45,585 bases of DNA from Salpingoeca rosetta (taxonomy: Eukaryota > Protista > Choanoflagellata), in assembly GCA_033442325.1 (NCBI GenBank), contig JAWQFM010000006.1:847228-892812 (forward strand), read 5' to 3'. Below the pieces are notes generated by a model. The model did not search any database and was not told where the DNA came from. It saw nothing but the letters and a program-made list of their open reading frames with translations. The position numbers were made by a program, and so were the translations under genes. Positions 29,147-32,100 of the stretch are shown piece after piece. The stretch's first letter is position 1. Every line of letters begins with the position of its first letter.

Positions 29147-32100
29147 TCACGAGGACTCGGTGTCTTCCACCTCAATCTCCGCGGAAATGCGGGCCACCAT
29201 GTCTTGAAATGCATCGGAGAGCGCATCCATCTGATCGGTGACCGCGCCCATGCGGGCGTCAATGTCCATACAGCCCTTGCGAATCTGTAAGAACATAAAA
29301 TACGTCCAAACAACACGCACACACACACGCACATTCATGCACCCACATTCATGCACACGAAAACACGCAAGCCAGCCAAAACAAACAACAAACAAACAAG
29401 CGTACCATGTGAGCACAGAGGTTGCAGATGCGTATGTGCACGCGTAGGACATGTGGCATGCTGATCGAGAAGAAATGACACGTGGCGGTAATGGTACAAA
29501 ACAACATCGCACGGTATCACCAATCCATCCATACACCACAGCCAAACGAACCCACCAAATCCTCCCTACCCACAAGAGAAAGCTAGAAGTAAGCAAGAAG
29601 GTACGTTTACAATTGAGAGCGCGTGTCTCCACAAACTCACTCACCCTGACAAGACGGTCGTTGGCTTGAATGAGCAGGTGGGTGACTGCCTCCGTGACAA
29701 TTCCAATCTCCGTTCGTTTCGCGCGTTCGGTGCCGACCGTGGAAACGGTGAGGTGTCGTGCTTCTAGCTTCTGCCGCAGCCCCGCAGGGATTACATACGG
29801 TGTCGGAGACTGCGAGCGGGTGATCCGTCGCCTGATGGGCACCGGCGGAGCGTGGAAACCCGGTTCAAGGTCATCGTCGCACTCGGCAGTGTCATTGCTG
29901 GCGTTGCGATGGACGACGGCAGCGTCACCGGCACCGTCCGCCCCAGCAGCGCTCTGGCCATGACCTGCCCACTGTTCCTCACACTCGCTGTCGCCGTCGA
30001 AGGACACCAAGTCCAACTGGGATTCGCTGTTGCCATCATCGCCACCCCCATCATTGTCTTGTCCTTCCCGCTCCGCAGCAAGTGGTTCTGGGTCACTAAA
30101 GTCGTGGATGGCAGCAGCACCACCACCGCTGCTGCTGTCACTACCGACACTATCGGTACGCTCGTGACCTGCACTTGCGTAACGCACACGCCTTGTTTCG
30201 GCGCCTTCTCTGCCTTGCCCTTCTCGCTCTCCGACTGCGTCTATTACCGCGTCTGCACCTGCGAGGGATCGTTGCTCAAGCGCCTCTCGCTGGCTGTCAT
30301 CCGACATGGCATTGGTGCCAGCGTCACTGCTCGTGCCATCGTCATCGCCAGAAATGCCCATGATCGCCGCCTCCATGTCCAGCCAGTTGGTGTTGGCGCG
30401 TTGGCGCGACCGGGTGACAGAGAGCTGTGCATAGGAGTCTGGCAGCTTGTGCGCAGCGTCCTCCTACATGCATGCATGTGCGTGTGTTTACACGTGTGTG
30501 TGTGTGTGGGTGAGAGAGCATGTGAGTGTGTATGCGAGAGTATGGCATGTTCGTGGTAGCGGTCATGTGAACCTCGCCATCAGCTCAACACACACGCGCG
30601 CGCGCCCATGAACTCACTCACACGACTCAGACACACATGCACCAATACACATTGGCTCACGTAAGCAGGCGCGCATTACTGACTCACCCCTTGCATGATC
30701 TGCATGCCCTTCATGATTTGTATGACGGCCTGTGCCACGCGAGTTGTGTAGACGGGCTGTGGCTGCGGTGCCTGGCCATTTAGCAGCCATTCCAGCTTTG
30801 GTTTTGTTCGCAGGAGGTAGCGCCTCCACGCAGCCTGAATGGTCATGACGCTGAAGGTCACCTGCAATGCGGCAGTGCAAAAAACGTGCGTGAGGATAAG
30901 CAATCCCTCTTGCCGGTGCAGCATCTTGTTTGCTGCAGTTGCTACATGTGCGGAGAACACATGCAGTTTTCACTCCAAGCGAGCTGCAGTGCTTGCCTGT
31001 CATCAATTCACCATCCCCCACCTTGCTGATTCGCGCGTGGAAGCATTCCCTGTTGTGTTTGACGAGCGAGTGTGGGGTAATATCCACAATCAGGCGCTGC
31101 TGAAGCTTGCAAGCAAACTCGTAGTGGTAGGAGGTGGTTCTGTCCGACGGCCAGTAGTTGTCGACACACCGCGGCACGGTGTTGCTGTGCTCAAGGATGC
31201 CTCGCTCCACCAGGTCATCCAGCTCCTGTGGTGCAAATCGAGGCGAACGCGACAGACAGCAGCGCATGTGATCGACGGTGGCAGCGACAGAAGAACGTGC
31301 ATGAGAGTGAGCACGCAGTTGCACAGGTGCGTACAACATGCAAACAAGCACACAACCAAGACAGCGAGCAAGCATGTACGCAAGACAATGAGCAAGCGAG
31401 TACGCACACACACACATGCAATGGTTCTGCAACCACATTATTTCCATGGGTGATGGCACATTGGGCATCAAACAACTCACGCGCTGCAGGACGTGAGCCG
31501 GCGATTCGGGCAGAAGTGCTTGCACCATTTCCGGCGAAAAAGCAGGCATGACAGCCGCAGTCTGTGTGTGCGCGTGCGTGTGCAAGTGAGAGAATGGGGG
31601 CGTGTGTGTTCATGTGAGTGGAAAGCACGAAGCGCATGCATGAGGTGTGAATGTGGGCATGAAAGTGTGTGTCCAAATCAAGCACAAGAATGGACGAACA
31701 ACGCGTTTAGCGTCGATATACACACGCACATACATACAAACCACACGCGCGCACATACACATTCACAAACACAAACACAATCACACACAGGCAACGGCAA
31801 CACACGGTGTTGCACCAGAACGTGGCCAGCAGATCATGTGCACATCAAGCGTGCCATCTCCGACCTTGACAATCAGCTGCAGTCGCCCTCTGAGCGCTTC
31901 GTAGCTGGAAAGAAGACACTTTGCCATGTCCTCCGTCACTCGCACCTGCCCAATGTCCTTGGTCACAATCTGAACAGGAAGGCAAGTGCATGCACGTGTG
32001 TGTGTGTGTGTGCGTGCGTGAGTAAGATTGTTGCACAAACGCCGTGCTTGTGAGTGGTGCGGAGCTTGACGCGGCAGGGCAGAGCAGAGCACGGTGTGGT

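Follow-up and report, generated by a model that had tools for sequence, protein, structure and literature searches.

An IQ motif that is canonical and expressed stands directly behind the STAND module of an ADCY10-type soluble adenylyl cyclase of Salpingoeca rosetta, at the place where relatives of this enzyme carry TPR sensor repeats. It lies in the window, i.e. the whole stretch of 45,585 nucleotides that was analysed, and is encoded by a constitutive coding exon of the cyclase gene. As far as can be read from sequence, the arrangement suggests a control of cAMP synthesis by calcium via a putatively bound EF-hand protein. An earlier note on this DNA had not recognised the architecture as characterised, and in the literature searched no description of a cyclase-STAND-IQ architecture was found.

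Gene structure and public gene models

From the exon map (Table 1) a single S. rosetta gene is read, which encodes a low-complexity N-terminus, C1, C2, the STAND module, the IQ helix, an acidic disordered linker and a terminal amphipathic helix, and for which a join of two public models is proposed. Publicly the gene is divided into PTSG_00867, comprising the first cyclase domain, and PTSG_00868, comprising the second cyclase domain, the STAND module, the IQ and the tail; the IQ-bearing half is hence already public, labelled 'hypothetical protein' and separated there from the first cyclase domain. Splice-site and phase analysis showed that an in-frame GT-AG intron is possible at 38022-38473, which would join PTSG_00867 to PTSG_00868, and in contrast to the two S. 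rosetta models the orthologues in Barroeca and Hartaetosiga are single ORFs, that of Barroeca being collinear with the exons of the window at 60-80% identity.

In exon 1, where the frame is open from 41588, the public model starts with an ATG at 40829. From 33979 down, every exon is open and of phase 0, and the reading frame ends with a stop codon at 29147-29149 (minus strand). RNA joints cover the STAND exons from 31481 to 34492, and the four fixed differences between RNA and assembly in coding exons are all synonymous. Exons were searched singly, with the public proteins (P0001, P0162) used in place of the joined product. Pfam Guanylate_cyc matched both public halves; a six-frame scan of the S. 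rosetta genome with the same profile missed this gene at E 0.01. The cyclase domains of the gene are divergent and spread over small exons. A fusion of SH2 and cyclase in S. rosetta was also considered and rejected, as the SH2 reading frame stops at a TAA with no donor site there.

Table 1: Features of the cyclase gene in the window, from the 5' to the 3' end of the gene.
Feature	Position	Strand	Evidence
Exon 1: low-complexity N-terminal region and start of C1	39771..41573	-	exon map
C1, first cyclase homology domain: 3' part of exon 1 and exons 39384-39497, 38884-39120	38884..40100	-	Pfam Guanylate_cyc on PTSG_00867
Linker between the public models, proposed exons 38474-38590 and 37911-38021	37911..38590	-	splice-site/phase analysis, Barroeca collinearity
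C2, second cyclase homology domain, six exons	36029..37640	-	Pfam Guanylate_cyc E 2.4e-11, PTSG_00868 residues 50-231
Rest of STAND module exons (nucleotide-binding, helical and part of winged-helix domains)	31481..35832	-	PTSG_00868 exon map, Foldseek, paralogue AAA_16
Winged-helix exon, last STAND part, ends ...ARISK, phase 0	31022..31225	-	RNA joints
GT-AG intron, 160 nt, between winged-helix exon and IQ exon	30862..31021	-	spliced RNA reads, 29 and 19 (two runs), and two contigs
IQ exon, 174 nt, 58 aa, phase 0 at both ends	30688..30861	-	RNA joints, contig pieces, translation
IQ core, IQxxxRRxxxR (11 residues)	30808..30840	-	Pfam PF00612, genome-wide scan, AlphaFold
GT-AG intron, 224 nt, between IQ exon and acidic exon	30464..30687	-	transcript contig joining 30687 to 30462; splice sites
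273-aa exon: acidic disordered linker, conserved patch, start of terminal helix	29645..30463	-	RNA contig pieces, composition
Last coding exon: remainder of 66-residue terminal amphipathic helix	29150..29284	-	RNA joint 29284/29645

Catalytic domains and STAND module

As the earlier note had proposed, the gene encodes an ADCY10-type soluble adenylyl cyclase; its two class III domains lie in tandem ahead of a STAND module. The best solved match of the Barroeca orthologue was human ADCY10 (4CLF; E 9.5e-35, residues 40-423), and according to the alignment and the S. rosetta exons the equivalents of D47, K95 (in DVIKFAGDA), D99, K334, T405, N412 and R416 (human numbering) are kept. The bicarbonate arginine R176 is lost and, as judged from the alignment, replaced by Ser in S. 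rosetta (QISISEP) and by Ala in Barroeca and the family consensus. As this switch residue is absent, the direct response to bicarbonate that the note had taken for granted may not apply to the S. rosetta enzyme. The cyclase is without membrane-spanning segments: the Kyte-Doolittle maximum over 19 residues was 1.16 in the N-terminal half, and the sole peak of the other half (2.15) is the buried STAND core near the Walker B stretch.

Foldseek related the STAND module to CED-4, Apaf-1, the plant NLRs Sr35 and NRC4, and MalT (probability 1.00, E 3e-06 and weaker), and paralogues gave Pfam matches to AAA_16. The winged-helix exon, 74% identical to that of the Barroeca orthologue, has a high-confidence fold; an ESM Atlas search with residues 560-800 returned weak leads only, the best named one being a MalT winged-helix cluster (0.85). 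Walker A is degenerate, reading KADVAMGTT in S. rosetta (exon 35351-35419) where an intact motif would be GxxxxGK[ST], with Thr at the position of the lysine. Elsewhere in the clade of this gene the corresponding stretches are KSDVAMGTT in Barroeca and GEFGMGGS in Hartaetosiga, whereas the other clades keep Walker A (GERGSGKS).

The IQ exon

The exon is preceded by an AG acceptor before GTGACC, ends with IMQG, is followed by a gtgagt donor and is identical to residues 722-779 of PTSG_00868. It had been placed at 30688-30862 in the earlier note, of which the sequence, the phase 0 and the IQ core at 30840-30808 hold, while the 5' end lies one base too far, 30862 being the G of the acceptor. Stranded RNA with joints 31019/30858, 30687/30462 and 29645/29284 ties the winged-helix, IQ, acidic and terminal-helix exons together, and one 4-kb transcript contig holds all four of them; among the contig pieces, 30687-30858 is joined to 29645-30462 and to 31019-31225, the joint 30858/31019 being cut +3. 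Membership of the exon in the cyclase mRNA, for which the note had proposed RNA-seq as a check, is thereby borne out by splicing on both sides.

The consensus tested was [FILV]Qxxx[RK]Gxxx[RK], with the Pfam gathering threshold as cut-off. With Pfam IQ (PF00612), a scan likewise proposed in the note and cut off at 20.3 bits, the exon scored 21.8 bits and its first 25 residues alone 24.7; within the 1097-aa PTSG_00868 the motif stayed under the cut-off at 16.9 bits. When the whole 55-Mb genome was scanned in six frames, the site reached 22.8 bits with E 0.007, and is therefore more than chance. The S. rosetta motif departs from the consensus at position 7, which is Arg instead of Gly, and its core also matches the basic 1-5-10 hydrophobic pattern (I, W, L). 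A net charge of +5 was counted over the 28-residue IQ stretch, and a conserved Pro 13 residues past the Ile of the IQ may leave less helix for a second calmodulin lobe. In the AlphaFold model the final helix of the winged-helix domain runs on into a 45-residue helix that carries the IQ (pLDDT 97 to 58 along the helix), with the core itself helical (pLDDT 91 falling to 73), in agreement with the note's placement directly after the winged helix. A candidate second IQ in the same exon was rejected, since it is not conserved in Barroeca.

The tail behind the IQ

The AlphaFold model shows nothing past the winged helix but the IQ helix, a disordered stretch of about 230 residues and a single helix of 66 residues, and no Pfam match to TPR was found in the public proteins PTSG_00867 and PTSG_00868. 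At the position of the IQ, relatives of the usual architecture carry TPR or long C-termini. The roughly 270 residues of acidic disordered sequence and the heptad-rich helix described in the note were also recovered: the product of exon 29645-30463 holds 51 D+E vs 26 K+R in 273 aa at a pLDDT of about 30, and contains a patch conserved in the Barroeca alignment, SPxPYV(I/L)P...LRQ(K/R)L. The terminal helix arises from the RNA-supported splice of 29645 to 29284, is predicted as one continuous helix (pLDDT 74-89) and in its best heptad register has 74% hydrophobic a/d positions. It probably mediates dimerisation or anchoring, a possible oligomerisation being suggested by heptad content and the length of the predicted helix.

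Conservation in choanoflagellates and relatives

At the same position, three paralogue clades spanning about 11 species of choanoflagellates have an IQ or IQ-like motif, with two further S. rosetta paralogues among the carriers. The motif is conserved in orthologues and paralogues alike. Invariant are a hydrophobic residue and Q at positions 1-2 and a basic residue at position 6; position 11 is mostly basic. Eight family members pass or touch the Pfam threshold (20.1-25.8 bits), and members of clade B possess two IQs in tandem at a spacing of about 25-30 residues. Only IQ-like or degenerate versions are present in about half of the family, and Pfam IQ gave no match in S. infusionum-1, S. kvevrii, C. 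perplexa, the S. rosetta C31 paralogue and the Monosiga reading. In Monosiga genomic DNA encodes VQAWWRKIHRR at the IQ position, which the public gene model splices out. Two public models are corrected here, namely, by the proposed join, the divided S. rosetta gene and the Monosiga gene with its IQ removed, and as a consequence of both errors the architecture had been hidden from domain databases.

An IQ at this position was absent from the sampled long eukaryotic and bacterial relatives with AAA_16 and TPR. A word search with the C-terminal third of the Hartaetosiga protein returned the query itself only and is uninformative on the absence of relatives. A quick LG+G4 tree, built on hits among which there was no animal sequence, placed the choanoflagellate clades together with sAC-like proteins of other eukaryotes and separate from those of bacteria; it did not settle how the three IQ clades are related.

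Possible mechanism and alternatives

The best explanation for the gene as a whole, and one that we consider fairly probable, is that a putative IQ-recruited EF-hand protein alters the C-terminal autoinhibition of an ADCY10-type cyclase core. Calmodulin or another EF-hand light chain would be recruited by the IQ helix, and its occupancy or a Ca2+-dependent change would alter the autoinhibition of the C1-C2 core by the C-terminal half. In STAND proteins the winged helix is the switch element, its movement deciding between a closed state and an open or oligomeric one, so that a change in the bound EF-hand protein would be expected to alter this autoinhibition. Such gating would be analogous to that by the IQ-like motif of the membrane cyclase AC8; the step from an occupied IQ to a change in catalysis is wholly inferred. 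As this clade has lost both the Walker A lysine and the arginine of the bicarbonate switch, nucleotide and bicarbonate may have given way to Ca2+/EF-hand as inputs. A farther-reaching version, which we hold to be distinctly doubtful, supposes that the STAND repeat sensor was swapped for the IQ helix and that Ca2+/calmodulin, in place of a ligand and nucleotide exchange, drives both cyclase opening and oligomerisation through the coiled-coil-like terminal helix; if true, the result would be a cAMP 'signalosome' triggered by calcium and, with it, a Ca2+-to-cAMP route that arose independently of the animal route via AC1 and AC8, the Ca2+/calmodulin-stimulated membrane adenylyl cyclases.

An origin of the IQ by chance, in a non-coding or misassigned exon or in a separate transcript, was the least probable of the alternatives, with next to no likelihood left to it: IQ motifs are short and degenerate, but RNA splicing on both sides, the genome-wide E of 0.007, the conserved position and the inclusion of the exon in PTSG_00868 rule it out. 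Alternatively, the IQ-like helix could be a structural, intramolecular element, an autoinhibitory or dimerisation segment to which no EF-hand protein binds, with the basic amphipathic extension of the winged helix packed on the cyclase core, the acidic linker or the terminal helix. In several members that fail Pfam IQ no more than a basic amphipathic helix with [ILV]Q is left, the strongly acidic linker could fold back on the +5 helix that it follows, and mammalian sAC possesses a small autoinhibitory motif right behind its catalytic domains (PMC6023465). A predicted complex of S. rosetta calmodulin (two exon pieces) with the IQ exon, computed without controls, scored 0.30-0.31 vs a mark of 0.34, a score that speaks neither for nor against binding. 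However, what is invariant matches an IQ motif exactly, the Pfam threshold is passed or touched by eight members, and tandem IQs as in clade B, which resemble those of myosin necks, are hard to explain by intramolecular packing, so that we judge this interpretation unlikely, if still of some weight.

It could also be assumed that the IQ binds an EF-hand protein constitutively, for placement and not for gating, which would tether a cyclase of Ca2+-independent catalysis to a flagellar, collar or cytoskeletal structure containing calmodulin or centrin. Constitutive binding of apo-calmodulin or light chains is typical of IQ motifs, as established for myosins and ciliary IQ proteins, EF-hand genes are numerous in S. 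rosetta (151 first-look candidates in a PF13499 scan), and the terminal amphipathic helix could be a second anchor. The position at the exit of the winged helix and the lost bicarbonate and nucleotide inputs fit regulation better, though, and a role in placement alone appears rather improbable to us.

Soluble adenylyl cyclases are regarded as direct sensors of bicarbonate, Ca2+ and ATP, and to our knowledge little is understood of what their large STAND-containing C-terminus does. In the choanoflagellate family the repeat sensor is swapped for IQ motifs, and one clade additionally lacks the bicarbonate arginine and the P-loop lysine, which makes these enzymes a simple and testable system in which to study the control of the catalytic core by the C-terminal half. 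Choanoflagellates being the closest living relatives of animals, the same cyclases can show the wiring of Ca2+ and cAMP signalling near the animal origin, and as S. rosetta is genetically tractable, the IQ motif is mutable in vivo.

Comparison with known systems

With ADCY10 the S. rosetta enzyme has in common that it is soluble, that C1 and C2 lie on one chain near the N-terminus with shared metal, substrate and transition-state residues, and that a putative NTPase/STAND region comes after the catalytic part (PMC6023465). ADCY10 differs in its C-terminus of about 1100 aa, as compared to the IQ, acidic linker and one long helix with which the S. rosetta protein ends, and in its direct activation by bicarbonate (K95/R176) and Ca2+, while in S. 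rosetta the equivalent of R176 is Ser and the Walker A lysine is Thr. No IQ motif was reported for ADCY10 in the literature searched. The bacterial and long eukaryotic CHD-AAA_16-TPR cyclases (Pfam PF00211 and PF13191) are homologous in C1, C2 and STAND, with E down to 1e-140 against the family profile; unlike the S. rosetta protein, they possess an intact GxxGxGKS/T Walker A and, after the winged helix, TPR (PF13424, PF07719 and others) and no IQ.

AC8, in which an IQ-like motif in the C-terminal tail binds calmodulin and mediates autoinhibition (PMC2708854, PMC10933263), is likewise a class III cyclase with such a motif in a regulatory C-terminal tail, and this is the mechanism proposed for S. 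rosetta. However, it is a G-protein-regulated membrane protein of 12 helices without STAND, and its IQ-like motif follows directly after C2. The two motifs have no common origin and resemble each other in working, not in family membership. Apaf-1/CED-4, plant NLRs and MalT, finally, share the nucleotide-binding, helical and winged-helix fold as well as a sensor C-terminal to the winged helix; theirs are ligand-binding sensors of WD40, LRR or TPR and their switching needs nucleotide exchange, whereas in S. rosetta a single IQ helix takes the sensor position and the P-loop lysine has been lost in the clade.

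Results

Expression and limits of the IQ exon

An AG acceptor, an open frame ending in IMQG and a gtgagt donor follow each other in the sequence of the minus strand. Stranded RNA-seq from two raw runs, together with Logan contigs from two more, was mapped to window positions 29000-34900; first mates lay on the plus strand across the whole coverage, so the RNA is transcribed from the minus strand, and the joints bear CT..AC ends, which equal GT..AG on that strand. The junction between winged-helix and IQ exon (30858/31019, cut +3) was crossed by 29 and 19 spliced reads in the two raw runs, compared with 11 and 22, and 5 and 9, at two junctions upstream. 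Since it overall carries at least as many reads as these, there is no sign that the IQ exon is usually skipped. The transcript contig X5 record 8 (4,064 nt) holds 31225-31019, 30858-30687, 30462-29645 and 29284-29000 consecutively. The earlier note had placed an IQ exon at 30688-30862 in the cyclase mRNA; its place in that mRNA was borne out by the spliced reads and the contig, both of which join it to the flanking exons, and the 3' limit at 30688 was retained, whereas RNA joints and splice sites identified 30862 as the last intron base.

From 33979 down to the stop codon, the exons are each a multiple of three and share one common open frame. At four coding positions (32504, 33231, 33297 and 34829) every RNA read of every run differs from the assembly, and all four changes are synonymous in the shared frame, a pattern in keeping with strain differences under purifying selection. 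At CA-rich intronic spots (30588-30605, 31751-31786, 32881-32906) many reads match over about 21 nt only, the rest of the read being unrelated; 118 of them, for instance, go back from 32905 to 31751 with 28 foreign letters in between. Such reads look like fragments of some abundant RNA of other origin or like repeat artefacts rather than like splicing of this gene. The contig extends about 2.6 kb past the region of the stop codon (window below 29000); this stretch is a long 3' UTR or else runs on into the neighbouring transcript.

Positions of features in the window, in further loci (L-numbers) and in the fold model of the C-terminal half
Feature	Location	Strand	Remarks
IQ exon	30688-30861	minus	174 nt, phase 0 at both ends; cut ambiguity settled by splice sites
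Stop codon	29147-29149	minus	
Putative linker between the two public models	37911-38590	minus	
Two canonical tandem IQs, S. rosetta paralogue C32	L008:266-442 (G000 C32)		
IQ-like VQTQTRQWIK, S. rosetta paralogue C31	L009:1515-1631 (G000 C31)		
IQ-like VQAWWRKIHRR, Monosiga	L010:7740-7772 (CH991556.1)		
S. rosetta calmodulin gene	L002		two exons
Well-ordered module	model about 30-510		pLDDT mostly above 90
One helix beginning inside winged-helix domain	model 481-525 (protein 705-749)		confidence 97 falling to 58 along the helix
IQ	model 505-515		on helix 481-525
Disorder	model about 555-781		pLDDT about 30
Terminal helix, one helix	model 807-872		pLDDT 74-89

Gene model and public annotation

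The final 160 residues of the long exon 1, used as HMMER query, hit a 520-aa protein at 100%, which cluster look-up identified as Salpingoeca rosetta PTSG_00867. A profile search then found PTSG_00868, encoded on the same contig; this protein of 1097 aa spans C2, STAND module, IQ segment, acidic region and terminal helix. The IQ-bearing half is hence already public as a 'hypothetical protein', severed from the first catalytic domain. By exact mapping, the exons of PTSG_00868 coincide with the RNA-supported ones with one exception: here the intron seen in the RNA is of GC-AG type (32868-33182), and the public model takes another acceptor. Exon 32772-32867 is RNA-supported after this intron; the public model, avoiding the GC donor, has the junction LLTKA-T-QCMSF.

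Judged from the sequence, both models are one gene (29147-41573) split by public annotation, because the orthologues of Hartaetosiga balthica (1410 aa, complete transcript ORF) and Barroeca monosierra (1646 aa) are single ORFs, the Barroeca protein aligns collinearly with the window exons between 40208 and 29594, and an in-frame GT-AG intron (38022-38473) is present, which could link the last good codon of PTSG_00867 to an exon that reaches upstream past the PTSG_00868 start codon. PTSG_00867 ends reading into an intron and PTSG_00868 begins at an internal Met. Spacing around 38022-38473 agrees with Barroeca, and we infer the junction to run via this intron.

Upstream, an SH2-domain gene lies on the minus strand (42939-44431), and a run of N at about 42000-42400 (509 N in the window) separates it from the first long cyclase exon, so that promoter and 5' end are only partly readable. 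In the Barroeca gene model (public protein P0151) an SH2 domain (residues 1-140; Pfam SH2, E 9e-17) is fused with the cyclase. This fusion is probably a prediction artefact, because the S. rosetta SH2 frame ends FLSK-TAA at 42939-42941 without a donor there and the Hartaetosiga transcript is without SH2. The gene order, SH2 and then cyclase, is conserved.

Catalytic core and C-terminal half

The assignment to the ADCY10 type made in the earlier note held, as the best solved match of Barroeca orthologue residues 470-960 was human ADCY10 (4CLF, E 9.5e-35) over residues 40-423, that is, both catalytic domains. In human ADCY10 numbering, the residues for metal binding (D47, D99), substrate (adenine; K334, T405) and transition state (N412, R416) are kept in the S. 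rosetta exons, which makes an active adenylyl cyclase probable. K95 of the bicarbonate site is kept as well; R176, the bicarbonate switch, is Ser in S. rosetta and Ala in Barroeca and the family consensus. No membrane segment was found in the S. rosetta cyclase.

Residues 225-1097 of PTSG_00868 were folded using a 32-row alignment. In the predicted structure, one helix continues from the winged-helix domain through the IQ, in agreement with the position right after the winged helix claimed before. For the ordered module Foldseek returned CED-4, Apaf-1, plant NLRs, MalT and a STAND-TPR protein (probability 1.00). Walker A is degenerate in clade A (S. rosetta KADVAMGTT, Barroeca KSDVAMGTT, Hartaetosiga GEFGMGGS); the other clades have an intact GERGSGKS. 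In its best register the terminal helix is hydrophobic at 74% of the a/d positions, and helices of similar character terminate the orthologues of Barroeca, Hartaetosiga, S. infusionum and Monosiga.

Significance and conservation of the IQ motif

With PF00612 the exon scored 21.8 bits and its first 25 residues 24.7, above the Pfam gathering cut-off of 20.3, so that the scan proposed earlier turned out positive. Scanned in six frames, the whole 55.4-Mb assembly gave 22.8 bits (E 0.007) for this site, one of about 65 above the cut-off; the exon is single-copy. The core fits IQxxxR-xxxR with Arg where Gly is usual, and also matches a basic 1-5-10 pattern, the stretch having a net charge of +5.

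The C-terminal 420 residues were aligned, with the S. rosetta exons entered as separate fragments, and a quick maximum-likelihood tree gave three well-supported clades, A, B and C (support 100, 97 and 99). Conservation in orthologues, the lack of which the earlier note had named as refuting its claim, was confirmed by this family survey: in each of the aligned choanoflagellate members the winged helix leads on to an [ILV]Q-xxx-[RK] helix, several being degenerate.

IQ motifs of the aligned choanoflagellate members by clade
Clade	Member	Motif	Pfam IQ
A	S. rosetta, window gene		21.8-24.7 bits
A	Barroeca	LQSAWRRYLLH	20.1 bits
A	Hartaetosiga balthica	IQTQWRKYLAR	25.5 bits
A	S. infusionum-1	IQKWVRKASGK	no hit
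B	S. rosetta C32 paralogue	IQALFRRIVRR + IQKAFRDYLMR	25.8 bits
B	H. gracilis	two IQs	22.5 bits
B	S. infusionum-2	two IQs	21.7 bits
B	a EukProt species	two IQs	20.6 bits
B	Codosiga hollandica	one IQ	23.7 bits
B	S. urceolata-1	IQ present	15.4 bits
B	Choanoeca perplexa	partial motif	no hit
C	S. kvevrii	IQQKTRHWLAV	no hit
C	C. hollandica-2	IQIKLRKWVAI	
C	S. rosetta C31 paralogue	VQTQTRQWIKT	no hit
C	S. urceolata-2, S. helianthica	degenerate motif	

Both S. rosetta paralogues were located by a family-profile search of the genome and reading of the DNA; in C31 a very long acidic, His-rich disordered tail follows the IQ-like motif. Clade B C-termini (public proteins P0157, P0154, P0025, P0101, P0159) share a conserved RN[TIV]GR[KNQ][LA]P, in most with further prolines after it, a possible SH3-binding or other peptide-binding site that the S. 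rosetta window gene lacks. The Monosiga brevicollis model MONBRDRAFT_32966 appears without the IQ motif. Its genomic DNA continues in frame straight on from the exon (LTATHK-VQAWWRKIHRR), and the model puts the donor exactly at the GT of the Val codon, by which the motif is spliced out; VQAWWRKIHRR satisfies the regular expression, with no Pfam hit. An IQ at this position was absent from the long S. infusionum form, Cymbomonas and Savillea proteins, relatives from the Logan assemblies of public sequencing runs and about 100 bacterial CHD-AAA_16-TPR proteins, where chance regular-expression hits occurred elsewhere. The simplest reading would be one IQ gain before the paralogues split; provisionally, among sequences that included no animal ADCY10, the IQ in sAC-like cyclases is choanoflagellate-specific.

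Discussion

An expressed and conserved IQ helix stands at the winged-helix exit of a STAND module, to which an intact soluble cyclase core is fused. IQ motifs are bound by calmodulin or by light chains related to it, often without Ca2+, and in STAND proteins the winged-helix domain shifts between closed and open states under control of the sensor attached after it. In mammalian sAC the catalytic core is inhibited by the C-terminal part (PMC6023465), and the IQ-like motif in the C-terminus of AC8 serves both autoinhibition and calmodulin binding (PMC2708854, PMC10933263).

An EF-hand protein probably sits on the IQ helix; a more tentative proposal, which we regard as possible, is that the Ca2+ state of this protein would alter the restraint of the C-terminal half on C1-C2. 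In clade A, EF-hand/Ca2+ input would then stand in for the lost nucleotide and bicarbonate inputs. Of the rival readings, a chance IQ match is refuted; the others hold that the IQ-like helix is a purely intramolecular basic helix, or that the IQ serves anchoring only.

Full-text literature searches yielded no paper describing an IQ motif in a soluble cyclase or the sAC-like enzymes of choanoflagellates. In ADCY10 the arginine R176 mediates activation by bicarbonate, whereas the S. rosetta cyclase is without it. Ca2+/calmodulin control of cyclases is already well known from AC1 and AC8, and since neither the sAC family nor the IQ motif is new, the architecture is a variant and not a new kind.
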